From Paragordius varius (lineage: Eukaryota; Animalia; Nematomorpha): a DNA stretch of 64,000 bases. The stretch covers positions 11,284,001 to 11,348,000 of the forward strand of contig OZ176054.1 in assembly GCA_964247055.1 (NCBI GenBank), read 5' to 3'. A model generated the notes under the pieces. The model worked only from the letters and a program-made list of their open reading frames with translations, was not told the DNA's origin and did no database searches. The translations under genes were made by a program, and so were the position numbers. Below, piece by piece: positions 10,426 through 48,889 of this stretch; the stretch's first letter is position 1, and each line of letters begins with the position of its first letter.

Positions 10426-10460
<35 letters not shown>

Positions 10461-11755: not shown

Positions 11756-11758
11756 ATA

Positions 11759-12912: not shown

Positions 12913-12998
12913 TATATATTTTGACAATATTGAACAAAAATCATAGAAATTAATTTTATAAAATCAAAAAATAAGATGTATTATAACTTAAAACATAC

Positions 12999-17156: not shown

Positions 17157-17181
17157 CTAAAATATAATCTTAAAAAATAAC

Positions 17182-17372
17182 TCTGGATTCATATTTTATA
17201 ACGAATTTGGAATAACTAATGTCGCAATAAATTTTATAGATTTGATTCAAATATGCTTTTTTGACAATTGGTTGGTCAAGTATTTTGAAGTTTCCGATTT
17301 GCAAATAACATTTCTGTTTATCCCATCTGATTGGGAAGGTTTCCCCCTCATTAGCATATACCACACTTTTAC
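17182..17372 (-). CDS. Gene 1 exon Y
   Basis: Acceptor CTATTAG, KSVVYANEGETFPIRWDKQKCYLQIG...YKIYCDISYSKFVIKYESR, donor AGA|GTTATT. Confidence 0.85.
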
Positions 17373-18738: not shown

Positions 18739-19152
18739 TACCATTTACAGTTCAAATTCACCTTTGAACAATTCAAATTCACCCTTGAACAATTCAAATT
18801 CACCCTCGAACAATTCAAATTCACCTTCAAACAATTCCAATTCACCCTCGAACAATTCAAATTCACCTTAAAAATTAATTATGATTTTCGAACTAATATA
18901 ACTAATTATTAATATGAAATATATGTTTATGGTATATTTTATTATTTTTTAAGTATTATTTTTATTGAAAACATAATTTTTATTTTTTAAAAATATATAG
19001 AATATAGGTAATTTTTAATCTTAAAAAACTTATATTTTTTTGAGGGTGAAATTGAATTGTTCGAGGGTGAATTTTAATTGTTCAAGGGTTAATTTGAATT
19101 GTTCAAGGGTGAATTTGAATTGTTTATGGGTGAAATCGAATTGTAAATGGTA
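18739..19152. mobile_element. MITE with inverted arrays of a 21-bp subterminal repeat
   Basis: TIR TACCATTTACA/TGTAAATGGTA with TA flanks; about 6 copies of TTCAAATTCACCYTYGAACAA on the left and about 5 inverted copies on the right. Confidence 0.85.
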
Positions 19153-20259
19153 TATATCATCTATCAGATTAAAATATTTTCTATAATTGATTTCATGCAT
19201 GCGTAATGAGTCAATTAAAAGTTAAATTAAATCATTTCTTTATATTCTAGTCATTTCCGTGGAATAATATTAAGTATAAATAGGAAATATCTGGATATAA
19301 AACAATAATTAATAATTTCAATTTTAATTTATCTCAAAGAGGAGTCCTGATATGAAAAGTAAGCAAAGTATTTTTTCATGCACCTAATAAAATACAAAAA
19401 AACACAAGACCACAACATACCATTTTGCGATCTAAAAATATGGCTTAACCGCTACAACCCTAAAATAAACTTTAAAATTGGCAGAGTTGATTAAATTTTT
19501 AAAAAATTATGCTGCATAATTAACTTTTAGACGAAAACTAATCTTTCTTTTAGCTCAACAACATTTTAAAAGATTTACTTCAAGTCTTGTTATATATATG
19601 TATTGACAAGCAATTTAAATGCATACGGTAAAATGTTTAGTGTCTTTCCCTAATTTTTAACATTGTTCGTATATTTTTAACGTTGCTTGTTTTTATCATT
19701 TTGAGAAAATTTAATCAGCCCCATTTACTTTTGAATTATGTTATTTTTTTATCTTTTTTTGCCCTAAAAATTTTAATTTGTAATTTCAACAGAGTTTTAA
19801 AATGTAGAATGCTTAGTATTAGCAAGTTCTTATATTAAAAACATAATTAACCAGTTAACCTGAGATGGTAAAACAAAGAATATGAATTTTTAAACTGATG
19901 CTTTAAAGATTATTTCCAAACCAATATTATAAAATATTCTTGATTATATATTAAAATCTGATATTTCATTTTAGACGCTTTACTACATCATAAAGGCCGA
20001 AGCTTCTTGAAACACAAAGTTATCAGTTATGGGGTTTATAATTTATGAATCAAAAATTATAAGCCAATTTGATTCATAAATAACCATGTAATAGCGAAAA
20101 ATGTCTGCTTAAGACAGTTTTTTATTTTCCTTGTTAAAGGCAATGAATATGCTTTATTTTGTTTTCAATTTTGACAATGTCTATTACACCCTTTTCTATT
20201 GCTATCAGCCTTTTTATCTGGTTATTTTGCATATGCTTGTGCAGAATAATTAAAGTTAC

Positions 20260-20523
20260 CCAATCTGATTATTCCTTTAAATTCAACACGTTGGTTTGTT
20301 TCATTTTTGTAACATACAAAATGTCTATCCATATGTCTATATTCAACAATTTCAGTGCGCTCATAAATGGTATAATTATGTTTATAACATTTGTCTTTTC
20401 CAGTTTTTTTGATGCCTGTGAACAACGTATTCGAACTAAGATTCCTATAGTCGTCGAGCACATTAATGTAGCAATTATAGTTTGAAAGTTTATCTCCCCG
20501 CTTTACATAGTGAGATTTATTCT
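20260..20523 (-). CDS. Gene 1 exon X: Ig-like module
   Basis: 264 nt, phase 1-1 (GTTTAG| ... G|GTAACT): NKSHYVKRGDKLSNYNCYINVLDDYRN...EYRHMDRHFVCYKNETNQRVEFKGIIRL. Confidence 0.85.
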
Positions 20524-22478
20524 CTAAACATGATATACGATTATAAAAATGTGAATTCAACTAATTTACATTACAAATTAAGTATAAAAAATATATATTT
20601 GGTCGCTATTTTTTAATGTTTATATTTATAATAAACGATTTTAATATCGTGGTATACACAAAATATACAAATTTTCGGGTTTAAATAATCCGATAAAATA
20701 AACTTTGACGCATTTTAATTAATATTTTTTATAATTTTTTTAAAAATGTTTAATAGATCATATTAAAATTAAAATTATACGGGCAAACATAGATTATTTT
20801 TTTATAAAACATAACCATATTTTTTAATAGCCTTTTGGGTGCATTTTAAAAAATAATTTTTAAACGTATGTAAAAAATCTTTATCATATTTTAAGCGTTT
20901 TTTTTTTCATTTCGATATTCGGTAGCTCAGGCTTTTAGTTTTGTAATGATTATAATAATATATCATTTTTTTGTATGCAATGCTTTAACTTGTATTACGC
21001 TATGTTGGATGCGATTACATTTTGGGGTACTTTTGTACCCCGGAGCTTAAATTTGTAAATAATGAAATTTTTTTTACAAAACATAGTTTAATCATTGTTT
21101 TCCCATTTAAAAAGTTACAGATTTCTATTTTATAGAGTCTAAAATTACGGTTAAAAAGCTAACAGCCTTTATCAAAATGGGAATATCAAAAATTTTAAAA
21201 ATATAATTTGAAAGCTTTCCAAAGTAACTATTTACTTTTTTTCGTATAATATTCATTTCTGTCTTTTGTACAAGCGTTTTAAAAATGCAAAAAAATGCCG
21301 GAATCTTACTAATAATAAATCTTTAAATCGCTATGGGAAACTAACCAAAAGGGTATAAAATGTTAAACAAACTTTTTGTTTTGCTAATAGTGCATTTTGT
21401 ATTAATTAAAACGGTAAAAATTGTCAATTTTTTTAAAAATATTTTAATACCTGTTGTGGTAGTTTTGAATACAGAAGGATTTAAGTTTAATCAAATATAA
21501 AAATATATGCTTTCTTTAGCCTTTTGGGCGTACAAAAAAATAAAATTATAAATAAATCCTAATCCTTTATCGCCCCTATTTTATTTATTTTGGATAATTT
21601 TTCATTATAAAACTGTCATATATATGTATATTTTCCGTAAAAATGTAAATAAATAACTTTTTAAAGTTTTCGAAACATAGCAGCAAACTTTTTAGAGAAA
21701 TTAATTTTATTTTCCTTTTCCAATCCTTTTTTGGACCTATCCCAATCGCCTAAATGATTTTACCAAAAATATATTTTTCAATTATAGGGGAACAATGTTT
21801 GATAAAATTCAAAACCAAACATTCAAAGCAATATATTATATACAAATTATAGCGGGTTAGGTTACAAAACACCCCAAAGTAATAAATAGTCTACAACAAA
21901 TGAAAGGGCAATAAAAGTAAAGAATGGATGATAAACACAGAATTTTAATAATTTTTAATTCATTAATAATAATATTAGATTACCACGAATATTGATTGTA
22001 AAGTTTAACATCTCTAGGCTTTCAAAACTTTTGTATGGTGATTTCCCATAATCTAAATAAATAAATAAAAAATTTTGAGGAAAATTAAACTATCATTGTA
22101 ACTATTATCGTTGTGAAAAACATTGCTCTTTACGACGTTAACTTATTAGGTAACTCTAAATTATTTTTTTTTAAATTTCAAATAAATGATGATTATTTAT
22201 CTTTTAATCTGAATCATAAATAAACCAGGGACGCGAAAAATTTGAACTATAATAGCAATAATATAGTCATGAAATATTAGCAAAAGATATTACTTAAACA
22301 AATTATTTAAATCTAATTGGCAACTAACCGAAAAGTTGTTATCTTTTATTTAAAATTTACAGATGACCATCTAATAAAATATTCATGAATGCCCATGCAT
22401 ATATTTCGAATGAGACCCGCCAGATTTTTTGAGTCAAAAAAGCGGCCTGAAAAACCTTTTGTCTTGAATCTGATTTAG

Positions 22479-22618
22479 ACAATAACCTTGAAATCAAACA
22501 CTTATTAGCAATCATTAACAATCTACTATCGTTTATAATATTTTTAGATATTATTATTTTGAAAACATTAATTATTAACAAAATATTCGAATATAAACGC
22601 AAATTATTATCATCATAA
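22479..22618 (+). other. Inverted orphan copy of the hydrophobic terminal exon (exon or pseudo-exon)
   Basis: Acceptor TCTGATTTAG, NNLEIKHLLAIINNLLSFIIFLDIIILKTLIINKIFEYKRKLLSS*; nucleotide-level paralogue of 27826-27962 on the opposite strand. Confidence 0.6.
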
Positions 22619-22638
22619 ATAAAATTTATTTATTTAAA

Positions 22639-23477: not shown

Positions 23478-26400
23478 TGTTAAGTTAGATCCTACTGTCG
23501 TAGACACAAACGCACCTATATAATTGTAAACACCTATAACTCTTTGTGATACACCTAGTTAATGTTAATTGATGCTTCAAGCAAAATAGTTAGCATATAA
23601 TTTCTGTATTATAACATCACACACACATACTTGATTTCTGGTATTTAATAAATGTTTTCTGTGTAATATAACTTTACTTCTTTCATTGGCGCGGTAACAA
23701 ACCTGGCAAAAATTTCTCTGGAAAGCTTTGATGAAAAGGAATTGACCGATCTTGATTTCTGGTATTTAATAAATGTTTTCTGTGTAATATAACTTTACTT
23801 CTTTCATTGGTGCGGTAATAAACCTGGCAAAAATTTCTCTGGAAAGCTTTGATGAAAAGGAAAATTTTGACCGTTTTATACATTCAGCGAATGCTAGCTG
23901 CAAAAAAGATGACAGCTAACGACGACGGCAAGACGTTATTTCTCGCTTACGCAGGAATGTCGGTCACAAAGAAATTCGACCGATTCCTTTTCCCAAATTC
24001 GCTTGATAATACCTCCTGGCCGGACATCATTGAAGCCGGCAGGAATATTTACGAATCGAATAGGATAAACATATTCCAGGCCAGATTCAATTTCGTAAAA
24101 CTTCGTCGGAAAGGAAATGAAACTTTTACGGAATTTCTTTTACGAATCAAAACCGAAGCCGCAAAATGCAAATTCAAGCTTGACATCTATGAGAAAATGC
24201 GCGACGTGTTCATTGCAGGCCTGGGACTGAAAAAATTAGAACTAGATCCGTTTACTAGATTCCCCGATGCTACGTGGGGAAACGAAGCTGTATCCCTCAA
24301 ATAAGTGGTAGACATTGCCCTCAACTATGAAAAAGCACATCAACTAACAACAATAGATGGCCAGATATTGCAGACTAAAGTTCGGAAATACCAAAACAAG
24401 TGTCAATTCTGCGGGTTAGGTCATGCACCCGGCAGATGCCTAGCTTGGGGCAAACAATGTTATAAGTGCCAAGGCTGGAATCACTTCCAACCGTGCTGTA
24501 AGAAGAAAAAGATTATCAACGTTCAGCATGTCGAATCTGGATCCACCCCCAAAATAACAATAATAATAAATGGCAACATGATTATAGACACAGGTTCAAG
24601 CGTATCTATAATTGATTGTCAAGCGTGGGAAAAATTGGGGAGCCCTAGTTGCAAAAAACAGGCCAGATTCGTATAGCTATGGTGGCCAAAGAATCAATTC
24701 CAAGGGTAGTTGTATGGTCACGGCAAAATCTTTGGCGTGTATGGTTGTAAGCGGCAAGAAGGCTTCATCAATTCTTGGTTGGGATTGGCTACAAGAATTC
24801 CCGAATACCATAAAACAGTCGATAAATTGTCGTAAATGTTTTAATATTAATACATTTGAGGAAAATTCTCTTGTTAATAAATTTAATTGATATTTTTGTG
24901 AAAAGTTAGGGTGTTTTTAAAAAACAATACAAAACCAAAAATTTTTAAGTGTCGCCGCATCCCGATACCGCTAAAAGAAAAAGTCGACTCTAAAATTAAG
25001 AGACTTTTAGAAGCGGACATAATCAAACCATTAGACCCTACGACTGAGAAACTAACCTGGGTCACTCCTATTGTTTGTATAACAAAAGCGAATGGTGCTT
25101 TAAGGTTATGTGCAGATTATCGTATTGCCATAAATCCGCATCTAGTAGATGTCATTTATAATATGCAGACATTTGACCAATTAGTAGTTTCCAAAATAGG
25201 ATTAGGAGAATCATTTTCGGTAATCGATTTGAAAGACGCATATCTGCAATTGCCAATAGATCAAGAAAGTCAAAAGTTACTAACAATTACCACACCCCTA
25301 GGGGATTTTACCTATAAAAGGCTTCCCTTTGGCCTAACAAGCGCTCCCTGCATTTTTCAAAGATTAATGGATAAAATTTTAGGTGACTGCTTAGGAACAG
25401 CTGTATATTTAGACGATATTTTAATAAAAGGAAAAAACCGCAACGAACATAAAAGAAGCTTAGAAAAGGTATTTAAGCGTTTAGACGAATCTGGTTTAAA
25501 ATTAAGTAAAAGCAAACTAAATCTTTTCAACCGTCGTAAGCTATTTGGGGTATGTTATTTCAAAAAACGGCATATCAGCCGCCGATAAAGTTAAAGACAT
25601 ACAAGACTTCCCAAGACCCACTGAAACAACACTCAAGTCCTTCTTGGGCTTAATAAATTTTCACACACGATTCCTCCCGAAATTGCATGGAAGTTTGGCT
25701 ATACTTCACGACCTAAGCAGTTATAAAAAACCCTGGATATGGACCAAAAACCACGAGGATTGCTTTAACAGAGCCACAAATTCAATATGTCATACTGTTA
25801 AACTCCGTTCAACCCTGGGTTACCTATAATAATCAAAACAGACGCCTCGAATAAAGGGTACGGAGCTGTATTACTACAGACCACGCAGTAGGATATAAAT
25901 AAACCCATTGCCTACGCATCTAGAAAGTGGTCTAAACCCGAAGAAAATTATTCAGTGATAGAAAAGGAATCACAAGCCATACTTTTCGCTTTTGAAAAAT
26001 TTAGAACGGTTTATTACGGGGAAGAAATTTGAACTGCGTACTGATCACAAACCACTAATAAAGATGTTTGGAAAAAATCGTAAACTAGACCAAATTAATA
26101 ATTCCAATCTACTACGTTGGATATATAAAGCTAGCGAATTTAATTACAATCTACGGTACATTAAAAGCCACGAAAACATTGCAGATCCATTGTCCCGCAT
26201 GCCGACAGAACCACAACAACAAGACACAGAAAGCCTTCAAACAGCAGAAAATGTAAGATTTGTCAATAGTAATCTATTCAATATAAATCGTGACCATATT
26301 AGAAGCCAGACCGAAACCGACCCTGTATTCGAACAGGTAATAAGAGCACTAAGAACAAACAACTCGTCCAATAAAATATTATATCCATTTCACAGTTTTA

Positions 26401-27771
26401 GAAATGAATAGAAAATACATACGGGCTATTATATTGGCATGATAGATTAATAATTCCCGAATCTCAAAAAATAAATACACAATTATTACACTTCGGATCC
26501 AAAGCAATGTACGAACAAGCAAAACAAATAGTCTTTTGGCACAACATGGAAAGCGACATAAAAAAGTGGGTAGATACGTGTAAAAAGTGTCAAGAAAACC
26601 GTCCGATGCGAAAACTGAATCCTACATACAATTGGAACACGAATACAGCATATGGGAGAGATTACATCTAGATATAGCAGCGAACAATTATTATTGGATA
26701 TAACTTATTAACAGTTATTCTCGGTGGGTCGAAGTTAAACTATCGAACATGATATCGACCAAAAATATCTTAAATATCCTAGACGAATGTTTCAGTCGAT
26801 ATGGATTTCCAAGAATGATAGTAACCGACAACGCGTCTTACTTTCCATCTGAGGAGTTAAAAAAATTCATGGAAACGGGAAACATTAAACATGTAACATC
26901 AGTTCCCATCATCCAAAAACGAACGGAATGGTGGAACGAGTAATATATACCCTAAAAACACATTATCGGTCAGCAGAAGACGGTGACCCACAATCAAAAA
27001 TAAATAACAGGCTTTGGGGATACCGCAACTAACATACACAGTGCTACAAATACATGTCCCGCTCTGCTTTTCCTAAAACGTACCCTACCCAATCCAATCA
27101 CATGACTACAATATCAACAAACAGACTTCTTAGACTATGTACAACCGAATCACGAATACCATGAAAACGAAAAAGTATACATAAAAAATGAACTAGCAAA
27201 TGGTTGGCGAGAAGGAAATGTAAATAAACGACTCGGAATACTCTCATATGAAATACAAGATGATAACAAAATCATCCGAAAACCCGCCGATCAGCTGAGA
27301 TCAAGGGAAGGAGGTGAAAGAATAATGGGAAAGACAATTTCGCCCGAAGAAAATACACCATCGCATGACCTATATGTTAGGTACCCTACTGCCACGACCG
27401 AAGCCCCGACATTACCTCCGCCTCAACCCTCGGAACCCATCATTGAGTTCCCATCCCAACAAACACCCACTATAACACCTACCACTGACACTCACACAGA
27501 ACGGCAATACCCTACACGTATCCGACACCCACCACATAGATATCAGGGACAGAGAAAGAGTGATGTTAGGTTAGATCCTACTGTCGTAGATACAAACGCA
27601 CCTATATAATCGTAATCACTTATAACTCTTTGTGATACACCTAGTTAATGTTAATTGATGCTTCAAGCAAAATAGTTATTATATAATTGCTGTATTATAA
27701 TATCATACACACATGTTTGATTTCTGGTATTTAATAAATGTTTTCTGTATAATACAACTTTACTTCTTTCA
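23478..27771 (+). mobile_element. Ty3/Gypsy LTR retrotransposon B, degenerate
   Basis: LTRs 23478-23685 and 27564-27771 (TG...CA), 5-bp TSD GTATC, PBS-like TGGCGCGG, purine tract AGGGACAGAGAAAGAG before the 3' LTR. Confidence 0.96.
23849..27310 (+). pseudogene. gag-pol of Gypsy B, fragmented
   Basis: Gag with CQFCGLGH / CYKCQGWNHF knuckles, protease IDTGSSVSII, RT (LRLCADYR, IDLKDAYLQ, YKRLPFGL, YLDD), RNase H ([19 protein letters not shown]), integrase (ERLHLD, FPRMIVTDNA). Confidence 0.95.
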
Positions 27772-27879
27772 GTATCCAAAAAAATATGAGTTATGCCGAA
27801 CCTGATGGCATAAATAAATTTATATTTATGGTGATAATAATTTACGTTTATATTCGAGTATTTGGTTAATTAATGTTTT

Positions 27880-27962
27880 TTAAATATTAATTTCTAAAAA
27901 TTTTATAAACAACAGCAGATAGTTAATGATTGCTAATAATTGTTTGATTTTAATGTTATTGT
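27880..27962 (-). CDS. Gene 2 terminal hydrophobic exon, probably truncated by a premature TAA
   Basis: Acceptor GACTTAG, NNIKIKQLLAIINYLLLFIKFLEINI*; the frame continues KTLINQILEYKRKLLSP* to 27826, matching the uninterrupted paralogue at 22479-22618. Confidence 0.65.
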
Positions 27963-28068
27963 CTAAGTCAGAGTATTATATATAAATTTATGACAATATT
28001 GAAAAAATATATATAGAAATTAATTTTATAAAATTAAAAAATAAGACGTATTATAGCTTAAAACATAC

Positions 28069-28266
28069 TTTTTACCCTTCCACCTTGAACATATGCATAT
28101 TTGCTTTTGTCAAGTATTGCAATATTACGCAAATTAAATTTGCAATGTTTTTTTGTAAGATTTTCATGGTGAATGAACGAGTATAGACAATAGATCTTGT
28201 AGTTTTCTTGTTCAATTTCATGAAAACAAGCTTTTGACCAAATTAATGATTCTGTTTTTTCTGCCA
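28069..28266 (-). CDS. Gene 2 exon B: 66-codon module with three Cys
   Basis: Acceptor TTTTTAG, AEKTESLIWSKACFHEIEQENYKIYCLYSFIHHENLTKKHCKF...YVQGGRVK, donor A|GTATGT. Confidence 0.85.
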
Positions 28267-28359
28267 CTAAAAAGATCCAAAAATAAGGTTTAATATTATT
28301 CAATGTTAAATGGATTGTTTTACAGCAAAAAATAAAAGTTTTATATTTAATAAGCATTA

Positions 28360-29411
28360 CACTGGACACCAAATTCTTCTGCCACTCGAGTTTTGCATTT
28401 TCTGGTATTTAGTATCATTTTAACAGTAAAATAAAAGTTATAACTCCACGTAAGAATTTTGTATAATTTGAGTTTTTGATTATACGCCCTCTTTATCAAA
28501 ATTCTACTAAAAAATGTTTTTCTTTGAAAATATACAAGTAATGTCCATTTGTTATCATTCGAAAGAGTAATAAAAACTCTATAAAATGCATACTAATATG
28601 TTTTACACCGACAGTTAATATTAGACATAGAGAGCGACAAACGCGCGAAGCGAGAGCATTTTTAATTAATATATTTTAAAACTAATGGATGAAAATAGCT
28701 TAAACTTTGTCTAGATGGTGGTGAATGTCCAAAAAAGAAAACAAAAAAAGTTTTTTTGATTAAAACATTTTTTAATTGTTTTATGTCACATTTTTAAGTT
28801 TTTTGTTTTTTAAAAATTACCATCTCATCAATATTAGTTTATTTTCTTTGCGAGGCTGATAATTTGGAAATTTTAAAGATAAAAACAAAGTTTAAGGTAT
28901 TTTTGATCTTATATTCATTAAGTAATAAATTTACAGTTGTAACTATGCATTTTAGTATCCACTAGGTAAAAAATTTATGATAATATAATTTTTATTAATA
29001 AAGCACACCAAAAGCTTTTTCATCATTTTTTTAAAATCTAATATATATATTATAATAATTTATATGATTTTCAAATTAGTTTGTTTGTGAAAATTTTTAA
29101 GGGTTGAAAATTTCGATCATATAAACCCAAATAACTTATAGATTGTTATAAATGACTTAATATCATTTGTATGATACAGTTTTTCACACTCTTTCGAATA
29201 ATATAAAATACATGGCTTCATATCTAAAACTTTTAATTTTCAAAATTTCGAGTTTAATGTTAAATTAAGGCCAAAAATTACAGATAAACTCTAATATAAA
29301 AGATTCTTAGGTGTTAGACCAATTTTTTTTTCAGATATGCTAATTATGTACTTTAATGAAATAAATTTACAAGAATGGCAGTTAAAAAGAATCAAAATTT
29401 GTTGTCTAGTG
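28360..29411. mobile_element. Non-autonomous CMC/Chapaev3-like DNA transposon in the gene 2 A-B intron
   Basis: TIR CACTGGACACCAAATT / AATTTGTTGTCTAGTG, 3-bp TTA duplication; the empty site GCATTATTTATCTGGC is present in the paralogous introns (about 13281 and 61226). Confidence 0.8.
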
Positions 29412-29848
29412 TTATTTATCTGGCTTAATAACGCATTATCAATCGTAGTATGGGGGAAAAACAAAAAAATGTAAAAAAATTACATAAAATAAAGTAAGAT
29501 AGGAAAAAATTGTTTAATCAACATTTAGCTGTTTTCTGCATACACTAAGTGTGTTCAATGTACCAAATCTGAATGAGACAGCATTAAAATGCATACTGTA
29601 ATAATTAAAAAAAGTATAAGGGTCTCATTGAAACGATAAATCTACCAATCAGTCATACATTTTAATATTTGTATTCGGTTCTTTTAAGATTTGTAAACCG
29701 AATCAAAATTAAATTCCCTAATTAAAAAATTTGATTATCTCCAAAATTAAACATAAACCTTACAAATTTCTAAAGAAAAACACAAAAAAATAATTTTATG
29801 GTTTAAATATAATTATATATATATGTATATATATATATAATATCTTAC

Positions 29849-30157
29849 CAATATTAATAAATCCATCAAAAACCACAGTAGTGTTATCTTTAGAGGTACA
29901 CATGACACTTTTATTATTATGAGCAAATTTGGCCACAGATGACTTCTCCCAGATATATCCATTTCTATCGCGGTATAAATAAGGCTGATTGTCATAGAGA
30001 TATATGCTAAGGGATAGGGCTTGATTCTCGTTAGTCGTTACTTGCACATAACAGTCCGTAATATTAACGGTTATGTTATACAGTTTTTTGAAGGCTTTTA
30101 GCGATTCCGTTATCTTTGCACCGTTAGCCATATATAATTGGGCGCTATAAGTGTGTT
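29849..30157 (-). CDS. Gene 2 exon A: 103-codon Ig-like module
   Basis: 309 nt, phase 1-1 (GATTAG| ... G|GTAAGA), contains DCYVQV...YIWEK...HNNKSVMC; same length as the two paralogues. Confidence 0.88.
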
Positions 30158-31789
30158 CTAATCAAATGAAGTTATATTACACACATACGTCTATACTATA
30201 TTGTTTACACCTAGAATTGGTTTTTTAATACTTCAAGGTGGCCCTTGAAAAAAATATTGTTGGACGGCAAGATGAAAAACTGAGATATGACATTTAATAA
30301 ATTATTGTTACATAAACAAACGTGTTAGGCATTTTTAAGTTTACGACCAACTTTAATACCTATGATGTTGTGTCAATCGGGGTAAATACAATTTTACATA
30401 AGAGTTTGCACAAAACCTGATCAATATGTTCTGATAGATAATTGGGTGCCTTTGGTCATGCTGTAAAGAGTAAAAAATTTTAAAACTTACTCTATATAAA
30501 ACCGCAATAGCACACGCTATGATTATTTAAAAAATAACATTTAAATTATACATAAACAATATTAAAAATCAAGAGTATGTTTTAACATGATTGGAGCTAG
30601 TAAAGTTTTAAATTTTAAAGCTCTCTACTATGGGCTAGTGTTCAAATAATCGCAACGAGATTGCACGATAATATTTTCTAAGATAATCCAAATAATGTCA
30701 TCAAAAATTTTTATTTTAAAAACTCATAATACATTAAAAAATTAATTTTAAGCAAACTTAAAGCGTATTTTATGGTTGAAAAATACGATAACATAAAGTT
30801 TAAGATTTTTAAATTAAAACACTTTTTTTATATCGATTATGCTCAATACATAACCTCAAATATTTTATTAAAAGATGTATGACTTTGAATCTAATCTAAA
30901 TAGATTCGGAAGTAATATTAATTAAATTGACTTAAATGACGACATTTAAAAAATCCAAGTTTGTTCATCATCAAATTATGCAGAAAAGTTGTAGTGATTA
31001 TCTTTAAATTTTATGCCGTTCTACCATACTACTTCAACATGCATACCATCGATTATACTTTAACAAAACTTTGTTAATTAAACTTAGTATCCATGCATTT
31101 TTTGACTTTTTTACGTCATCCTTTATTTAAAATATAGTATTGCGCATTCTGGAACTTTTTGTGTTTATTTTTTATAAAGGATCACAAAAAATAGTTTTAA
31201 GAGCTATCTTGTATTAAAAATTGAGATAAATATAACATTGATTTATGTAGTAAGCTAGCACTTCCCAATTATATAGCATGATGTGCTAAATAATTTTCTC
31301 ATTTTTCGATATCTAGTAATAAGTATAGCACTTTGAGATACTTTATACATATATTTATGAGATGATATATAATTTATCAGGATATAAGTAATGAGAATGT
31401 ATTATTAAAATTCAATTTAAATTATAAAATGTACAAAATATTCCCATGAATTTTAAGGAAAACTACTTTTTTAAGATATTTCTTTGGCCCCGAAACTTGA
31501 GTTAAAAGGGCTTTGCATCTTATTTAACATACCCAAAATATTATACAATAATACAAAAATCAGTTATGCTTACTTGGTTGGAAAGGTAGTGTTTTGCTTC
31601 TCAAAATATCAATCTTCTTTTCTAAAATAATATATAATGATTAACAATATGCATTTTAATCTAACATAATCTTATAATTTTCGGGCTAAAACTTTATAAG
31701 CATTTAAAATATAACCAATTACCAAATTCTTTCATAGTTATAACCAATAATGTTATTTTAATTTGTTTAATTTATTTTATATTTTAAAC

Positions 31790-33130
31790 ACGGTTGTTAG
31801 ATTTGGATACAACACATTCATTTCAGTACTTCGAGTCAAATTGGGGTAGTTGCAGGCCTGGTTAAAAATATTTAATTCAAAAATATGGAATGAATTGTAA
31901 CCATGGAAAAAATTTGCACCCATATAACGTTAATGAACCCAAATATATAAAAAAGTTCCATCAAAAATACTGATATTACTTATTTTAATGTAAAACCGCA
32001 AGGTAAATTAGTCATGGGTGTGCATTACCTAAATTTAAATATAATAAAAGAAACCACTTATTATAATTCTATCATTGTTTGTGTTATAAATGATAATTAG
32101 CTATATTCATGGTGTAAAAATAAATAAAGACGATATTTGAAAATATGTTGCAAAATAAAAATGGCGTCGAACTAATTTAATATGAAACTTTTTCCAAAAA
32201 TAATTTATTTGAATATTTCGGCTTGTTTATATAAATTTATTAAGATAGAAGCATAAAATTAAATTAACACCGGTTCTTTCATTAATTTTTTAAAATATTA
32301 ACTTAAATATAGTCTGGGATATTTAGATACCTTAATTTTAATCTAAGTGTTAATAATAATAGGGGGTTCATCAATCATGCATGCAGTCAGTATCCCTACA
32401 AATGGTTACAACAAAATGGAGTAATTTGTTTAATTTAGATTTAAACTTCTTCCCTATTAATATGTTATTGTTCCATCTAACATTATAAACTGTCGTTTTG
32501 TATGTTTAGCTTAAACCGCGAACTGTATCAAAATTTTATTTAAATGATTAAAATAAGGGTATTATGACATTATAACTATACAAATTCTTAAACACTTGGA
32601 TACAACACATTCATTTTAATCCTTCGCAAATTGAGGTAGTTAAATACCCCAGGCCTTAAAATTAAATTCTTCAAAAAATATGGAAGGAATCGAAACCATG
32701 GCAAAATCTTGCACTTATATAACATTAATAACAGAAATATATAAAAAATTTATTCAAAAATATTTGATATTACTTATTTAAAGTTAAAACCGAAAGGTAA
32801 AAATTTAGTCAACGTGGCATGCGTACACTGGTAAAATTGAAAAATAATAAAATATACATCTTTTTCTATTTCCATAATGTTAGATGTAGTTTAAATAAAA
32901 AATTAGCTTTTACCCTTAAAATTAAATGAAGACGATATTTTGCAAAAATTTTGTATAATAAAAATGGCGTCGAAGAATTTTGACAAGGAACTTTTTTTTC
33001 AAAATTATTCAAATATTTTGGCATATTTATATAATTTTTATTAGGATAGAAGCACAAATTTAAATTGGGCCCGTTTCCATATTTTTTTAAAAATCCTAAC
33101 TCAAATTTAATCTGGGATATTTAGATACAC
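31790..33130. repeat. Diverged direct repeat, two units about 790 bp apart
   Basis: TTGGATACAACACATTCATTT, AAAATGGCGTCGAA and CTGGGATATTTAGATAC each occur twice in the same order (about 31800-32330 and 32595-33130). Confidence 0.8.
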
Positions 33131-35159
33131 CAATTTGAATCGAAGTTTTAAATTCTTAAAATGTTGTGGGATTCATCTAATGACCACAGAGTCCATCTAT
33201 GACTTTTTTATCCACTATTTTCCGGATCTATCGCTTTTTCGCTCACCTTCAACGGTATTCAATATGATTTTTAAAATCATAAGCCTACAAATATTGTTGG
33301 AATTGTTTTATTTAAGAATGTACCACGCTGATGCACAATATTTAGCTGGTCACAAGGAAAAGTTTTAGAGATTTTCAAAACTTGGAATATGATTTTGTGA
33401 CGCCTCGTTAATTTATACAGAGGCATATGAGCTGAAACATAGAATTCTATGTAAAAAATTGGAATAAAGAATTATAAAATTAATGTAAGCGTTTTATGGC
33501 AGTTTCCAGGCATCACAAACGGCGCAACGCTCGAGCTGAAAAAATTTAATTAGTAGAAAGAAATATCAATAAAATAATTACAATTTGATTAATTAACAGT
33601 CTGATAATTTTGTATATATACTCTATGTACACCCTGATAGATAAAAGTATCCGAACTCTCATAATGCTTTTGGGTTTGCTCTTTGCAAAAAATATAGGAG
33701 AGTTTATAGTACTTTTCTGGTAACTCTATAACAAATTGGCGAATTCAGCGGATATTTTTCTAAATAAAAAATTTTTGGTGAAAGCTAAATTCTTCATCCC
33801 AAAAAATATCAAGAAAATATATCATGAATAATGTAAAAAGTAAATCAATTATAAAATTTATGATATCTGTGGGTTCAGAAAGTTTGAATTTTCAACACAT
33901 CCAAAATGGGCATATTTTCTTAAACTAAACGCAATAATGCCAATATTGCGCAAAAAGTTAGATATGTGCTAATGACATAAAAAAATTTTTTTCGAAAAAT
34001 TGGGTATTTTGCTTAAAAATTATATTTATAGCTAGCATTGGTGAAGCAAAACCTATTTTGAAGCATAGTGGAAACGGAGTAAAAACACTTTAAGATATTA
34101 TGCTAACATTCATAACATTATGTTAAAATTTCTATCATCGCAGATTTTTGATTAAAAGTGATGCACTAAATTTTTGCGCTATGTCGGCATTTTTGTGTTT
34201 AGTTGAGGAACTGCCAAATTAGACGGGTCCAAAAATTTGAGATTTTTGGAAAACACATCTAAAAATTTATAATTTAAAATGTGTGTTTTACTTTTAAGTT
34301 AGTTGATATACATAAAATTTCTTAAGCAAAATATGCGCAAAATTCGCTACTCTCTGATATAAAGTTACCACAAAAGTAGTATTAATCTTTTTTTTAAGGC
34401 CCGAAACCAAAAGCAGCGTGAGAATCCAGAGATATTGATCTATTATTAGAAAGTCTATATATTTCATCAGGATATATTTTATGCCCCCGGATTTTGTGGG
34501 CAGTGTATATAGGAGGATGATAACTACATAAAGTAGAGTAGTTTGATATGTTGGAAGTTGATATTATGGGAAAAGAATGATCGATAATATAGTTGAATAA
34601 ATTGCGACAATATTTGAATATAGAATATTCATAAAATAAAATATGGGGACATGTCCAATTGTGTTGTGATGGTATGTTTTATGAATATAATATATATAAT
34701 AACAATTGGAGTAAATTGGTAATCTTCATATGCTTCAACATCAACAATTTACCTACAAACTTTTATAAGTAAAGATCCCGTATTAAAAAATAATGTTGTA
34801 ATCAATCAGCATATGTTATAATTAATCTAACAAATATGAAGCTAAATTAATAAAATTTTTACAAACATTTCGTATTTAAATATAATCTAAAATGGTCTAA
34901 ATGATTTACACACACGTCTTAAGCTTCTACAATCACCAAGCGCAAATTTGCGTTTTTTCGCTAAAAATAATTATTTACTCATTGCAATTAAAAGAGACAC
35001 ATGCATCCAAAGTACCAGAACGTTAACCTAATCGGTACGTAACATATATCGTTTTGGGGAAAAAATGACAAGCAAAACCAGTTTATGACTTTAAGCAAAT
35101 AATTGAACCAGGTAGATAAAAATAATACATGTATATTGATATTGAAACGTATAATGTTT

Positions 35160-35206
<47 letters not shown>

Positions 35207-35211
35207 ATTAC

Positions 35212-35317
35212 CTTTGATATTGCCATGTTCAGCAATAAAAACTTCTAAATTAGAGGTAAAATTTAGTGTTCTGGAAGTATCTTTGCGTAAAGCATCATAT
35301 GCAAAAATTATATTATC
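35212..35317 (-). CDS. Gene 2 exon Z: after a 25-nt intron
   Basis: DNIIFAYDALRKDTSRTLNFTSNLEVFIAEHGNIK, phase-1 donor G|GTAATT; paralogue of 17057-17156. Confidence 0.8.
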
Positions 35318-35342
35318 CTAAAGTAAAATATTGCAAATTAAC

Positions 35343-35539
35343 TCTGGATTCATATTTTATATCGAATTTGGACATACGAATGTTACAATAAATTTGATAG
35401 GTTTGATTGAAATGTTCCTTTTTGAGAATAGGGTTCTCATCATAAACAACGCTAGAGTTTCCAATTTGTAAAAAACATTTCAATTTTTCCCATGTTATTG
35501 GAAAAATTTCCCCCTCTTTCGCATATACATCATGTTTTT
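35343..35539 (-). CDS. Gene 2 exon Y: first part of second module
   Basis: Acceptor GATAG, KHDVYAKEGEIFPITWEKLKCFLQIG...YQIYCNIRMSKFDIKYESR, donor AGA|GTTAAT; paralogue of 17182-17372. Confidence 0.85.
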
Positions 35540-35724
35540 CTATCATAAATTAAATTGAATTAGTAAAGCCGAAAGCTTATTTAATCGATAAATCTCGATA
35601 AATTAATAGCTATATTCAATATTTTAAAAAATCTCGATTTTATTTAAACCTTAGGCCACCAGTTTCTTTTAATTTCAAATAATTGTGAAAATTTTAACAT
35701 TCGATTGTAAATATCAGCAGTTAC

Positions 35725-35985
35725 TTAATTTAATAATGCTTGCAACAATTTGGGTTTTCTCATTGTAACATATAACTGGTCTATCCATATGTCTATATTC
35801 GGCAATTTCACTTTGTTCATAGATAGAGAAGTTTTGTTTATAACATTCGTGACATCGAAATTTATTTAAGAAGTTTTTAAACAATCGATTTGAAGTCTGA
35901 TTTCTAAGATCGTCTAGGACTTTGATATAGCATTTATGCTCCGAAAGCCTATCTCCCTTCTTTACATATAAGAGTGAATAAGTAT
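35725..35985 (-). CDS. Gene 2 exon X: Cys-containing Ig-like module (absent from ORF track)
   Basis: Acceptor TTTTAG, 261 nt open, phase 1-1: TYSLLYVKKGDRLSEHKCYIKVLDDLRNQTSNRLFKNFLNKFRCHECYKQNFSIYEQSEIAEYRHMDRPVICYNEKTQIVASIIKL; clear paralogue of 20260-20523. Confidence 0.85.
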
Positions 35986-38770
35986 CTAAAAGTTACGATA
36001 AATAAAATGTAATGATAACCAAATTTATTATTGGATCAATTAATTTACAATTCAATACACTGTGAAGGCGAAAATAATAACCAGATATAAAATATATATT
36101 CTGAAAAATAGATGTTTTATGAGTTTAATGATACTTTCGGTTGAGCCTAACGAGTGATTTAAAATTAAAACCATTTTTGTTGTCACTGCCTTATATCGCA
36201 ATATGTGCACATTATGCCGATTAAAATGGTGTAAGCTAAATGCTTCATTTAAAAAAATATTACTAAAATATATCATAAACTATATAAATAATTTTTATAA
36301 AAAATTTAAAATATAAAATGTCTCAAACTTTTGGAACTAACCGCAAAAATGCCGTACGCGATTATTTATTTAATATGTGCTAAATTTTGACATCAAAATA
36401 GTTTTTCCCGAAAAAATGAATATTTTGCTGAAAAATTTATTTTTTAGCAAAATTTTGGATAATTCGTATTTTAAGAATGGTGGAAACGGTATATAAACAC
36501 TTAATGATATTGTAAAAAATTCTTTTATATATTATTTGATAATGCTGCACATTTTTATAATATCAGGATCTTATTATAGAATGTATATGACTTTAAATTT
36601 TAAATGATTTTTTTGTAACAAAAACTTATTATTCTTACATAAACATTTTGAATCAAAATTCTGAGGTAAATTTTCTGCATCATCAAATCATATAAGGGGT
36701 TCTCTCACATCGTTTCCACCTTCATAATACCAAAAAAATTCAGATCATCAAAATTTTGCTTTAATTAAAAAATCCACTTTTTAGGAAGCATTTTTTATGA
36801 CAAAATTTATTACATGTTTAAAAATTTTATCGTTTTTTTTTGATTTAGATTAAAAAATTCCATTTTAGATAAGTTTAAAATTTAAGGCTTTCGGAGTTCA
36901 CATCTAACATTTAAAATTTATAATGCATTTTTAGTTTATGATATAGCGATGTTTTTGAAATAAAGCATATAGCTTTCTCCAAAAAATTATAAGTATGTGC
37001 TTAAAATTTGCCATATAATGCAGTTACTACAAAAGTGGTAATAACTTTTACATCCACTTATAATACCCAAAACCAAAAGCACCTTGAAATTCCTGATACA
37101 TATATTAATCTAAATAATTTTAGTGTGAGCTGTGTATATTTGTGATGGAATAATTTTATGTAATAATCAATTTTTTTAAAAACTTATATAAATTGAATAT
37201 ACCTTCATGTATTATCTTATATAGACATAAAAATGGCTACTTTCTATTAGACAATGAGGCATAAACGGCTTAAAAAAAGTTTTTTATTTTAAAAGTTTAT
37301 TAAAAAAATTTATTTTATATGTATGCTTCAAACATTCACACCACCTCATTTGTATGATAAGGCGCGCTCTTTGCTTTTGATACAAAATCTTTTTCGATGA
37401 TATATTAACAAAATTACATTTTTAAGATAAATTAATCAAAAATATTTAAAAAGAGATTCCTTTAACTGCCACGATATCAATTATTATCTTAAGTCGTTAA
37501 CACACAGTTGTTTGATCAATACATTTTTAACCCATATATATTTCCTTAGTAAACAATCTACAAAATAATTATTAGCATTTAAAACATATTTCGATTTTGT
37601 CGCTTTGTAAAGAACCTTATAGTTACTATTTATTTAACTATATATTGTAAACATTACACAAAAAGTGTCAATTCAAAGATACTCACCTTTATTACATTAT
37701 AAATAAAATATTTAATGGTATGATAAATAATTACCAAAGGTTATTTTTAATGTCATGTTGCGAAGATTTCTAAGTTTGGATATTCCATTATCTAACATAT
37801 GAATAAATTTCAATCATTAAATTTTATTAACACTTCGATCAAGGTTTATAATGCTATAAGAATATAAAGCATATGATCTCAATTTAAAGCTTCAATTACA
37901 ATAAAAATAATTATATATGGCTAATTATCTATGGCTAATTATCTATCATGAACTCTCCTCATTTATTTCGAATTATTTGGAAAGGCGTTTTTATGAAAAT
38001 GGATATTTATTTGAAAATTCAGATTTTGAAAATGTTTAAATTCAAATTTTTAAACATTTTTTTTGGATAAAAGTCGGAAATCAAAAATCTAATTTTATTA
38101 CATACGCATCAAGCTAATTTAAAAATTATTATATTCAAACATTTTTTCATCATTTGTGCATGGAGCGAAAAAATATTGACTCAAAGCGTGTTTACACAAA
38201 ACTTATTTTGACCAGAATTTACCCTAAAATTATTAACAAAAATATTAATTATTGGTGTAATTTCATCCTCTATAACATAAATATATATGGATCAGGCTTT
38301 ACATGTAATCTAAAGACACATTGAGAATAAATAGGACTCGATCTATGCATAATTATATAAAGAACATGGAAAAAGAAATAAAGTTCTCCCTTAACCGTAA
38401 TTATTATCGTTCAGAGTTTGGTTTCAAAACTCTAACTTGACAAAATTGGTAAATTTATCAGTGTAAAACAATTTATATATCGACGCTGTCAAATTATTTT
38501 CTTTTAATAAAATATATGGTTGTTTTTTTAAAAAAATACAACATTTGTATAAATATATCATCTCTATGGAAATTAAGGTCACTTGACCATATATATAAAA
38601 GCACCCCAATTAATTAACAAACATTTAAAAGGTCATTTATCTATAAATATGGTGATTTTATCTGTTCTAAAATTCCATTCAAAAATTAATAAAGCGATAA
38701 TTTACTATTAAAATTATATAGTGTAATTACATGGAAAATGTTTGTTAAATATATTTAAAATTATTATTAC

Positions 38771-38858
38771 TTTTTCGTAAGGCATTTTCACATTTATAGG
38801 GTCCCAATATACATGCAACAACAATCAATAATGTGTTAATCAGATAAATTTTAGCCAT
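38771..38858 (-). CDS. Gene 2 exon 1: signal peptide
   Basis: ATG at 38858, MAKIYLINTLLIVVACILGPYKCENALRK, phase-1 donor A|GTAATA; basic-hydrophobic-polar signal-peptide pattern. Confidence 0.65.
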
Positions 38859-45358: not shown

Positions 45359-48267
45359 TAAGGTGACCAGATTTTTTGAAGGAAAAAGCGGGACATATCT
45401 GAGAAAGGGGGGAAGGCTTGGGGGGGGGGGGGTACAACCAAAAATTTTTATAAAAAAATTATTGTTTATTTATTTTTAACACAAATCTCCATATTTATAA
45501 AAATGGAAAATGCTGGCTTTGTGATCTGTTTCCGGAAAACCGGTAGACTCATTCAAATCCAAATGTCGAAAAAATATAATCATTAATAAAAGCCACGACA
45601 ATAGCTTTGCCCTTTTTTGAGTTGGGCCCCCAGTTCGGGCCCACCCCGTGTAAAAAACGGTTTTTTTTGAAAACAGAAGTCCACAAAAATCGTGACTTTG
45701 AGATTTACCGGAGAACGTGTTGGACAATTCAATTTCAAATATGATTTTTGTTTACTTATTTCGATTGCGCCGAACATAATCGGCTCGCTTAATTTAGGAC
45801 CTCTTTTTACCCGCTCCCCCCGTAAAATGCTATTTTTTTAAAAAACAAAGTCCACAAAAATAATTTTTTGAATCTATTTTTCCCCCAAGTAAACAATATA
45901 TTAGTATGAATGCACCGTTTTAAAATTCCTATGAGATCATAGCTATTAATTAATGTTTCGAAATAATCCACATATGTAGATCCTTTTATTGTCCCTTTAT
46001 CAAATAGCATCCCCTCCCCCCAGAAATCCTAAGGACTTCCTCGGGCTGCGTAGCAGCACCAGATTTACGCTAGTACATTATAAATATAAAAAAATAATTT
46101 ATTCCTAAGTATATTTTTTATTTGAGTGAATGCGTTTAGCAGATTGTCATCTTTAAAATATTGTAGAAGTCTTCACAAGAATTCGTCAAATTATATTTGA
46201 TAGATAAAATGGCCTTTAAAGTTTCATTATTTAAATTTGATTTTTCCGATGTCCACACCTGATTTTCTGTGTAAGAAACGCGCTCAGTAGCAGCGTTTGT
46301 TCCAGGTAAAGATAGTGCAAATTCCACAATTATTAAAACATTATTGTATGGAACATAGTTTGTTTCAAAATGATGAAATATTTCTAACCATTTCTTTTCT
46401 ACTGTATTTTTTTCTGTTGTCCACAATTTAAATTTTTCATTATAAATATATTTTTTAGCTAATGATACTCAAAAAAAGATTATTTTCTGAAAGATTACTT
46501 TTTGGGAATTTTGGGGAGATGCAGATGTAATCAATGATTTTTGAACATCGCACCAATTGAATTGTAGTTTGAATGTTATCCAATGAAAATGATCAATTTC
46601 ATTGAATTGCACCGTCCAGTCTTCCAAATAATCTTTACAGTTTGTATAAAACATTTTTATATGGTACAGGATATCTTGGCGATTTATTAAGCCTTGTTTT
46701 ATTATATATAATATTGCGGACGATTAATGGTATAAAATTATTTTCTAACCTTTCGTGACATTGAAATTTTAGGTTATTAACTTCATTGGTACTTCGATTG
46801 CCGAAATTACCATCTATCAATTTAATAACATTTTAAAAGAGAGAAGCTTGATTATGTAGGAACTCTAACCATATTTGAAGAATCACTTTCAAAAAACTTT
46901 TCCAAAGTTTTAGGACATTTGTGATAAAAATTGGAATAGGAATACATTTTTAAAATTCTTTCGATAGCTAGCACAAGAGCTAACCAACGAGTTTCACAAT
47001 ATCCAAGCATTTTTTATATTGAACTTCTGCATTTTCACATAATTCCTTAAGCGTTTCAACGCGTACCATGTATATAAAAACATAGGAATGTATTTTAACA
47101 ACTACATTTTCCACATCTAGGGGTAACAAATCAGCAGCTGTTTGAATAGCGTTGTGTATTATGTGCGCTGCATACCCAACGCCAATAAAGTTTTGATGAA
47201 AGCTATTCATGAAAAATATTTTTTGGCCCCCTTTTTGCTTTTCCACCGAAGTTCGTATTGGTGTTGTCAGCGCAATATGCGATGATTTTGTCTTATTATT
47301 TTTTTCTAGAATATTGATTATTGAAGTAAAAATTATGACGGAATTTTCACCGGATAGAGAAATAAAATTTAAAATTTCTGGATTAAGATTATTTATTAAA
47401 CTGGGAAATAATTTTGTTTCCTTGTGATTTGATCCATCAGAGTAAAGCGGTATGAAATTAATTTTCAGCAAATTTTTTTGGTTTCAGAAAATGTGGTGAA
47501 ATGATATTGCATAAAATGGATTCAGCCTTTGTACGGGCGCATGTAAATTTTTTATTGGATATGGTACGAATAACCTATGAGGTACAATCTCTAGATCTAT
47601 GGGGATGATTGTGATTAACGGCGTGAAAAGATAAAACGCCTTCGGCTAGTGCCAAATTCTTTTCTTCCTCTCCAGAAGCGGTTTTATATAAACGCTCATT
47701 TTGTAAGATGATTTGCCATATCTAAACATTTTTTTCTGTGTTTCCATATGCTTTGTAATATCATGCTTGCCGCCATGTGCTAGGGTGAATTCCCCCTAAA
47801 GAACATTTAAGAATTCCTTGTTTTTTTGATAAAAGGAAATTCTTTCATTAATTTATCGTTAAATTTACAACCACTTTTTGTACTCATATTTTTAAACTAA
47901 TATTAGTATAAAAAATATTATATTACCTTGATTTTCTGGAGTAAAAGTACAAGCCACCGATTTATGGTATTAATTTGTCTTTTTGATGGTGTTGGCAGGT
48001 AATATAATTAAAATATTAGTATAAAAAATATTTTGTTACCTTAATATTTTGAAGTAAACGTATAAGCTACCCATTTGTGGTATTAATATGTCTAAAATTG
48101 ATATAGATTTTAAAACTAACTAATGATAAAAAATTTAAACGGATAAAAAAATTTTTTTATAAAAAATTTAAAATTTTTTTTTATATAATCGTGAAAAAGC
48201 GGGACATTTAAAAAGTGTAGCGGGACGCGAGACAAAGTGTGAAAAAGCGGGACTTCTGGTCACCCTA
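45359..48267 (-). mobile_element. hAT transposon (Blackjack-like), full length 2909 bp
   Basis: 13-bp TIRs TAAGGTGACCAGA / TCTGGTCACCCTA, perfect 8-bp TSD GGTATATC (45351-45358, 48268-48275), subterminal GCGGGAC motifs. Confidence 0.95.
46136..47800 (-). pseudogene. hAT transposase, fragmented
   Basis: N-terminal FTLAHGGKHDITKHMET, central GYAAHIIHNAIQTA, C-terminal hATC LSLPGTNAATERV; broken into several short ORFs. Confidence 0.9.
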
Positions 48268-48853
48268 GGTATATCTCAATTAATAAACCAGCATTGGAAA
48301 ACAGCCTAATACTTTTAAACAATATTTCATACATTAGAATAATTAAAATTTTTAATCAAAAAAATGTTTCGTAACTCACCTCCCAATATCTTCACATATA
48401 GGGGTCGATCCATTTAATTGTAAAAGCATGTTTGTTTTCAACAAATTTTTGACTCTTTCAACCTCAAAATCGGTAATTAATGTACAAAGTCGCACCCTAT
48501 ATATATATATATATATATATATTTTGATGGTTGCTTATTTCACATTATAGTTGGGCAATTTGCAACACAGTAGTGCATGGAAAAAACAACAAAATGTTGA
48601 CTAAACAATTTCATCCTCTCTTTTTTCCATACACTACTGTGTTGCGAATTGCCCAACTATAGTGTGAAATAAGAAACCATTAAAATTCACACTGTATATG
48701 TAAAAACAATTTTTATATTAATTTAAATGGATGTGCGTGTGTTATCGAAAACAATGATATTAATAATCATTTTGAACGAAAAAAACGCGCAAAATTTTGT
48801 ATATTTGAAATACATGTGATATATAAAGCCCCGTTGAAATCAATATATATTTA

Positions 48854-48889
<36 letters not shown>

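Follow-up and report, generated by a model that had tools for sequence, protein, structure and literature searches.

What kind of gene lies behind a cluster of short, open, cysteine-containing exons in the genome of a horsehair worm? We addressed this question for a 64,000-nucleotide (nt) stretch of Paragordius varius DNA (contig OZ176054.1, assembly GCA_964247055.1, positions 11,284,001 to 11,348,000 of the forward strand), hereafter called the window, to which all coordinates below refer. A first-pass annotation, made from the letters alone, had proposed a tandem family of divergent immunoglobulin (Ig)-like surface receptors, with one complete gene, here named g2, and further copies, here named g1 and g3. 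Our analysis makes it rather likely that g2 and the incomplete g1 and g3 form a lineage-restricted tandem family of tethered surface or coat glycoproteins. To our knowledge, few animal phyla have been studied as little as the horsehair worms, and we know of no molecular basis described for the survival of their juveniles, which spend weeks in an insect body cavity, or for their manipulation of the host.

A seven-exon gene with an open frame of 413 codons

The exons of g2 are as follows (modules are named X, Y, Z, A, and B; aa, amino acids; GPI, glycosylphosphatidylinositol).

38858-38771, minus strand, 88 nt: exon 1, start codon and predicted signal peptide, 29 codons plus 1 nt, phase-1 donor GTAATA
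35985-35725, minus strand, 261 nt: exon 2, module X, 86 aa, 4 Cys, 55% aa identity to X of g1
35539-35343, minus strand, 197 nt: exon 3, module Y, 65 aa, 2 Cys, followed by a 25-nt GT-AG micro-intron (35318-35342)
35317-35212, minus strand, 106 nt: exon 4, module Z, 35 aa, closing the Y+Z phase 1-1 unit
30157-29849, minus strand, 309 nt: exon 5, module A, 102 aa, 2 Cys, invariant core with mosaic variable patches on either side
28266-28069, minus strand, 198 nt: exon 6, module B, 65 aa, 3 Cys, 80% aa identity to B of g1
27962-27880, minus strand, 83 nt: exon 7, polar spacer, 15-residue hydrophobic tail, TAA, resembling a GPI signal

The hand-spliced model of the first-pass annotation was verified: all seven exons have AG/GT borders, and joined they give 1,242 nt from ATG to TAA, encoding 413 aa without an internal stop. 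The recomputed intron phases are, in order, 1, 1, 0, 1, 1, and 1, and the units X, Y+Z, A, and B are each bounded by phase-1 introns, again as first proposed. The intron lengths are 2,785, 185, 25, 5,054, 1,582, and 106 nt. Exon 1 was the sole candidate upstream of exon 2 that combines an ATG, a hydrophobic core, and a phase-1 donor. Beyond exon 7, an ATTAAA/AATAAA-type signal is located at 27735.

The window has a G+C content of 27.7%, at which a stop is expected about every 12 codons (0.085 per codon). From base composition, the chance probability of an open 413-codon frame is approximately 1e-16, and that of a single open 102-codon exon is approximately 1e-4. When transposon relics were excluded, six of the stop-to-stop open reading frames of at least 85 aa in the 48-kb duplication unit described below were family exons. 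Furthermore, the G+C content is higher in the g2 exons (30.1%) than in the introns (24.5%). A hairworm origin agrees with the figures of published hairworm genomes (26.9% G+C, 64% repeats; 10.1101/2023.06.26.546503) and with the conserved 25-nt intron described below. A ciliate or other alternative genetic code, suggested by the 25-nt intron and the 28% GC, was rejected, as scans for open reading frames under codes 6, 10, 4, and 15 did not lengthen the frame across the gene. Nothing was found when the window was scanned for Rfam families and tRNAs.

Two incomplete paralogues in a tandem duplication

The window covers 1.3 units of a tandem duplication of ~47.9 kb, and each unit contains two paralogues (g1, 20523-12999; g2, 38858-27880), two long terminal repeat (LTR) elements, and a hAT relic.

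12999-20523, minus strand: g1, with X 20523-20260, Y 17372-17182, Z 17156-17057, A 14346-14038, and B 13199-12999, all open
60944-62256, minus strand: g3, with A 62256-61948 and B 61144-60944, the remainder lying beyond the window end
47923-64000, no strand assigned: second copy of the segmental duplication, corresponding to 1-16223, 97% identical, unit of ~47.9 kb
22469-22633, plus strand: inverted relic of the g2 tail exon and its 3' flank, 87% alike to 27972-27810, tblastn match at 22478-22528

The recurrence of the X-Y-Z-A-B order at 20523-12999 held up. Exon order and phases of g1 are identical to those of g2, its borders are GT-AG throughout, and all of its splice sites are intact. The g1 exons measure 264, 191, 100, 309, and 201 nt, thus differing from those of g2 by +3, -6, -6, 0, and +3 nt, all multiples of 3. 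The 25-nt micro-intron, which sits at coding position 546 of g2, is found in g1 at 17157-17181, with the same length and position and a different sequence. Neither stops nor frameshifts interrupt the 355 codons of g1, the 413 of g2, or the 169 of g3. The A-B exons at 62256-60944 (g3) are also present as first annotated; however, they are not an independent third copy. Because 1-16223 and 47923-64000 are 97% identical, g3 is a very recent duplicate of g1.

The colinear similarity between g1 and g2 consists of the exons and short flanks. In the 5' half of the gene, conservation ends near the exon borders, and of the 9.7 kb of g2 intron only ~0.8 kb aligns, all of it adjoining A and B. Contig depth over exon A is ~10-12. 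Since this equals the depth of the single-copy flanks, the exons are not a high-copy transposon.

We confirmed that g2 is the only complete copy. Between g1 and g2, neither tblastn nor a scan for a hydrophobic ATG exon with a donor (strict and relaxed) found a credible signal-peptide exon for g1. At the other end, the homology of g1 and g3 to g2 breaks off ~15 nt before the last acceptor of g2, and the tail exon is absent there; the phase-1 donor that closes exon B of g1 is intact, but no tail exon follows it. The inverted relic at 22469-22633 is the only other copy of the tail exon in the window. A ~1.1-kb self-inverted element (11776-12910) occupies precisely the place where the homology of g1 and g3 to the g2 tail exon ends. 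In all copies, (TA)n microsatellites are located a few bases past the Z and A donors (35160-35210, 29806-29840, 13979-14032, and 14721-14751), and their lengths differ among g1, g2, and g3.

Coding constraint in modules X, Y, and Z

Between g1 and g2, the proportions of differing synonymous (pS) and nonsynonymous (pN) sites in X+Y+Z are 0.50 and 0.23, respectively (Nei-Gojobori counts; Fisher P=1.5e-7). To judge from these counts, the deficit of nonsynonymous changes is the signature of translated, constrained sequence. The dN/dS values are 0.32 for X, 0.43 for Y, 0.23 for Z, and 0.88 for B, and dS in X, Y, and Z is ~0.5-1.3.

Exon A is a gene-conversion mosaic

The two duplication copies diverge chiefly at 11.8-15.9 kb, in the surroundings of exons A and B, where the differences reach 63 per 200 nt at exon A versus 1-3% elsewhere. 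Site counts from a three-way alignment of g1, g2, and g3 differed by segment.

Flanking introns of exon A: g1=g3 at 78 sites, g3=g2 at 1
Exon A N-flank: g3=g2 at 22 sites, g1=g3 at 9 (Fisher P=5e-15)
Exon A C-flank: g3=g2 at 9 sites, g1=g3 at 1
Proximal 3' intron: g1=g2 at 22 sites, g1=g3 at 14 (P=1e-6 against the 5' intron)

These patterns oppose each other from segment to segment; therefore, tracts of ~50-150 nt have moved between the paralogues since the duplication. We conclude that exon A is a gene-conversion mosaic among paralogues. Its central 54 codons are near-invariant at synonymous and nonsynonymous sites alike, and its flanks differ by ~30% at both. Because of gene conversion, the core of A is identical at silent sites, and pN approximates pS in A and B. 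In the N-flank of module A, pN/pS is 1.2-2.1 across the three copies, with counts too small for a test. Together, the data support a concentration of variation in module A. Such a mosaic is compatible with a variant antigen or an allorecognition system, and also with ordinary concerted evolution.

Independently, such a patch was seen in run X3, a DNA run from another sample with a different organism label. There, a 538-nt contig is of the g2 type on both sides of a patch in exon A and carries, at 30004-30034, exactly the seven substitutions of g3 (TTNENQALSLSIY -> TINEDQALLHSKY); only 6 other differences were found in ~3.4 kb of X3 single-copy contigs. Two origins of the patch are conceivable: a conversion tract that segregates, or a chimera of paralogues formed in the de Bruijn graph. 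On 29840-35839, runs X6 (organism C) and X3 (organism B) provided single-copy contigs with 0-3 differences per 200-850 nt from the window, and a single species, or several very close ones, probably stands behind their organism labels. Quite apart from these runs, misidentified species in one hairworm genus are reported in a 2026 preprint.

The g2 protein is predicted to be secreted, glycosylated, and tethered

The g2 protein contains only two strongly hydrophobic 15-mers, at residues 4-18 and 395-409. At the N terminus, MAK is followed by a 15-residue hydrophobic core (Kyte-Doolittle value [KD] 2.69, the maximum of the protein) and by the small residues A-C-I-L-G. By this hydropathy heuristic only, g2 has the signal peptide expected of the GPI-anchored class. 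At the C terminus, the spacer IKIKQ precedes the hydrophobic stretch LLAIINYLLLFIKFL (residues 395-409, KD 2.33), and the protein ends with EINI. Short and lacking any cytoplasmic part, this tail resembles a GPI-attachment signal, which we regard as putative. The designation "receptor" used in the first-pass annotation is thus doubtful, since a 15-residue hydrophobic tail plus 4 residues leaves no cytoplasmic domain.

NxS/T sequons are enriched: the protein has 10 of them, compared to 3.8 +/- 1.7 in shuffled sequences, and only 5 of 2,000 shuffles reached 10. Of its 13 Cys residues, 11 fall in the modules (X, 4; Y+Z, 2; A, 2; B, 3) and two in exon 1, where the hydrophobic core of the signal contains one of the two. 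The Cys pairs in X and A are spaced 51-54 residues apart. In summary, the predicted layout is that of a secreted, N-glycosylated, C-terminally tethered protein.

The modules are partly related to each other. X is homologous to A (BLASTP E 5e-5 over the C-terminal halves), and in an alignment of five X and A sequences, G, C-Y, V, N, I-x-E, H, and the second Cys are invariant. Relative to X, module A has a 15-residue insertion ahead of the first Cys. Y and B have W-x-K-x-(x)-C-F and Y-x-I-Y-C in common; the only match between them, the short Y-x-I-Y-C, has a nonsignificant E value of 0.065 and is suggestive of homology. As far as these alignments go, it is therefore probable that the ectodomain arose by internal duplication of a pair consisting of a long and a short module.

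No recognizable relatives

All homology and fold searches were done exon by exon. When the six module and tail exons were run through Pfam hmmscan at E<=10, two sub-threshold chance hits were the only matches. At this cutoff, no exon matched any Ig-clan family (ig, I-set, V-set, C2-set, Ig_2/3). Likewise, no exon matched PF07422 or PF04092 (6-Cys s48/45, SRS), or a viral or transposon protein in Pfam. The profile of X+A retrieved nothing meaningful among Protein Data Bank (PDB) sequences, the one match at E=0.025 being rotavirus VP4. Feature searches of the ESM Atlas with A, X, and B returned no usable match, and a word-based protein search with X was blank, its length window being one that would exclude full-length relatives.

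An exhaustive HMMER search with the module A profile against 1.84 billion representatives retrieved only four proteins (E-values of 7e-7 to 3e-4, summed over repeats), three of which are bacterial-type propellers with "YRDxxGxIWD" blade repeats. A 20-28-residue stretch of the invariant core of A (YLYRDRNGYIWEKS), modeled by AlphaFold as a beta-hairpin, resembles the blade motif F/Y-R-D-x-x-G-x-I-W-D-S of bacterial beta-propeller repeat proteins. However, module A has one copy of the motif, compared to 5 or more repeats in the propellers, and the motif is not kept in X. With matches that are short and repeat-summed, we judged this likeness to be a chance or convergent hairpin.

The AlphaFold2 models of A (pLDDT 64, pTM 0.52) and X (pLDDT 74, pTM 0.62) share one topology: a strand, a strand with the first Cys, a helix, and four strands, to which A adds a helix in its insertion. 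Foldseek against the PDB yielded no hit at E<=0.001 for either model (TM<=0.35), and a wide structural alignment (VIA-align) yielded nothing above noise. In an Atlas structure search, the models reached TM<=0.59, with UvrA fragments; we discarded the likeness to the UvrA interaction domain (TM 0.57-0.59), an alpha/beta arrangement of a common type. On these shallow alignments, the module fold is not recognizably Ig or any other known fold. The hairworm comparative-genomics literature that we searched (including 10.1101/2023.06.26.546503) does not mention such a family. With Pfam, the 1.84e9 representatives, the PDB, and the ESM Atlas all empty of kin, the first-pass description of a lineage-specific clustered family holds.

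Weighing the readings

The reading we favor is that of a family of tethered surface or coat glycoproteins. If transcribed and spliced as modeled, g2 would encode a product that enters the secretory pathway via its N-terminal signal peptide, is heavily N-glycosylated and probably disulfide-bonded, and is most likely held outside the cell by a GPI-type C-terminal signal. Its ectodomain would be a doubled two-part unit, the long X plus the short Y/Z followed by the long A plus the short B. As there is no cytoplasmic part, the product would act as a coat or an adhesion/recognition glycoprotein and not as a signaling receptor. The family expands by segmental duplication of the 48-kb unit, and short-tract gene conversion among its members generates the patchwork of module A around the invariant core. 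Any role at the host-parasite interface is inferred.

Several observations weigh against this reading. First, the share of sampled words present was ~0.00 in each of the five RNA-labeled runs filed under the species label, and two RNA-labeled runs, X9 and X10, had no contig on 29840-35839 at 85% likeness; being small and of unstated life stage, these runs are no evidence of silence. Second, exon 1 of g2 has neither a paralogue nor RNA support, the first and last exons are missing from g1 and g3, and part of the cluster may accordingly be decaying. Third, in A+B, pS (0.139) and pN (0.141) are about equal, which, on these counts, fits relaxed constraint as well as it fits diversifying selection plus conversion. 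Fourth, the patch in run X3 could be a bubble-popping artifact of the de Bruijn graph between paralogues. Finally, the candidate omega sites of the putative GPI signal are not clear-cut (GGR or NNN) and are atypical at omega+2, and the models of A and X, built from alignments of 3 and 5 sequences, are of low-to-moderate confidence.

The equality of pN and pS in A and B, the missing signal-peptide and tail exons, the lack of a match from the two RNA-labeled runs tried, and the LTR and foldback insertions adjoining the genes would also suit a mostly or wholly nonfunctional cluster of young, decaying copies, the frames of which are kept open by recency and homogenization through gene conversion. 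We consider this unlikely, although it is the strongest of the competing explanations. Purifying selection on X, Y, and Z is clear at a dS of ~0.5-1.3. Moreover, 355, 413, and 169 codons (g1, g2, and g3) are free of stops and frameshifts where random frames close every ~12 codons, the splice sites are intact in every copy, and sequons are enriched.

Could the modules instead be divergent C2/I-set domains of the Ig superfamily (IgSF), and the genes Ig-like surface receptors akin to invertebrate allorecognition clusters? The first-pass annotation based this on phase 1-1 exons, a Gly before the first Cys, and a DxGxxxxC-like motif at the second. The phase 1-1 exons are indeed present, the Cys pairs of X and A lie 51-54 residues apart, the genes are clustered and variable, and the weak, nonsignificant Foldseek lists (E>=0.07, TM<=0.35) consist mostly of Ig and cadherin chains. 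However, phase 1-1 exons are not diagnostic, being common to many extracellular modules (CCP, FN3, CUB, EGF), and a Cys pair ~50 residues apart is similarly nonspecific for Ig domains. The Ig core triad is not there: X has no Trp at all, and the only Trp of A follows the first Cys by 34 residues instead of 10-15. Leading up to the second Cys, the sequences read RPVIC and KSVMC; position -2 is not a Tyr and position -6 not an Asp, and there is no D-x-G-x-Y-x-C. Both AlphaFold models place a ~10-residue helix after the first-Cys strand, and these mixed alpha/beta models of low-to-moderate confidence, without a significant structural match, lend the Ig proposal no support. Together with the absence of Ig-clan matches and of a transmembrane or cytoplasmic signaling part, this makes the proposal quite improbable. 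The Ig label currently has no positive support and is to be dropped unless a deeper alignment gives a confident beta-sandwich.

Just as doubtful is a bolder form of the glycoprotein reading, namely, a hairworm-specific variant surface-coat system of undescribed fold. Here, an exposed module A on a GPI-tethered protein would be continually re-patterned by short-patch conversion among the tandem paralogues, with incomplete copies such as g1 and g3 as donor cassettes, and the juvenile would thereby evade or engage insect immunity; alternatively, the system would serve self/non-self or gamete recognition.

Slightly less probable still is one large transcription unit, in which the signal-peptide exon at 38858 would be spliced to alternative or additive X-Y-Z-A-B cassettes to give combinatorial isoforms. 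Only one first exon was found for two sets of cassettes, all modules are phase 1-1 and hence frame compatible, and g1 exon B retains a phase-1 donor with no tail exon behind it. On the other hand, g2 carries a tail exon of its own, stop included, 106 nt past B, the search downstream of g1 turned up no such exon, and a 4.3-kb LTR element and the inverted tail-exon relic lie between the cassette sets. That the exons are part of a transposable element or of a captured viral gene for an envelope-type glycoprotein, as the richness of the region in LTR, hAT, and foldback elements and a glycoprotein with a signal peptide and a hydrophobic C terminus might suggest, is highly improbable in view of the six spliceosomal introns of up to 5 kb, the single-copy contig depth of the exons (true repeats of the same stretch reach 1,000-19,000), the lack of viral or transposon Pfam matches in any exon, and the position of the copies, which have no terminal repeats themselves, within a simple tandem duplication.

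Repeats in and around the genes

Between the 3' end of g2 and g1, an LTR element is located only ~110 nt beyond the g2 stop codon.

23478-27771, plus strand: degenerate LTR retrotransposon, LTRs 23478-23685 and 27564-27771, 93% alike; RVT_1 2e-25, RT_RNaseH

A second degenerate LTR retrotransposon is located at 5896-10044 (= 53837-57980). Both elements are ~4.2 kb long, and their reverse transcriptase, RNase H, and integrase fragments are broken by stops. A relic of a hAT-family transposase lies at 46136-47483 on the minus strand (Dimer_Tnp_hAT, E 6e-6). Intron 4 of g2 contains a high-copy repeat (31640-33240) with two direct copies of ~550 nt (31803-32353 and 32596-33151) that are 75% alike. 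Its contig depth is 1,000-19,000 versus ~10 in the flanks (Logan, run X3), with many internal joints, and it is probably an abundant dispersed or satellite-like element. The duplication unit also carries a minisatellite with a period of ~100 nt (2025-2917 = 49968-50857) and a foldback pair (3171-3556 / 3695-4091 = 51109-52029) of ~400-nt inverted repeats that are 90% identical.

Significance and comparison with known systems

A tandem family of putatively tethered, heavily glycosylated proteins without relatives, one module of which is shuffled between the copies, is a concrete candidate for the worm-host interface or for cell recognition. It is also proof that entire gene families of Nematomorpha are missed by automated annotation and by searches for homology; its genes combine a 25-nt intron with a 5-kb intron and have no homologues. 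If the family proved unexpressed or unremarkable, it would be one more orphan family in a repeat-rich genome.

Short donor patches inserted into a conserved frame recall, by analogy, the trypanosome VSG, Borrelia vlsE, and Anaplasma msp2 systems, and the predicted GPI-type anchoring recalls VSG. In contrast to these, only three hairworm copies are seen, with no expression site and no sign of programmed or somatic conversion or of immune selection. Moreover, ordinary gene families often show germline conversion between paralogues in tandem.

With Hydractinia Alr and with CEACAM/PSG, the hairworm family shares a tandem cluster, a module-per-exon structure with phase-1 introns, variation in one extracellular module, and exchange between paralogues. 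It differs from them in showing neither an Ig-clan match nor the Ig core triad, in having no transmembrane segment with a signaling tail, and in being known from sequence alone.

The closest parallels in layout may be the 6-Cys/s48/45 proteins of Plasmodium and SRS/SAG1 of Toxoplasma, which have a signal peptide, tandem pairs of disulfide modules of ~60-120 aa, and a GPI-type tail, as g2 is predicted to have. These families are lineage-restricted, multicopy, often arranged in tandem arrays, and displayed on the parasite surface, in which we liken the hairworm family to them. Nevertheless, there is no sequence or Pfam match between them, the Cys count is 4, 2, 2, and 3 per module and not six (or four), g2 is an animal gene with six introns, and the predicted modules are mixed alpha/beta and not a beta-sandwich. 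The theme of clustered surface glycoproteins, specific to parasites or to a lineage, is familiar, and the hairworm family would be a further variation on it.

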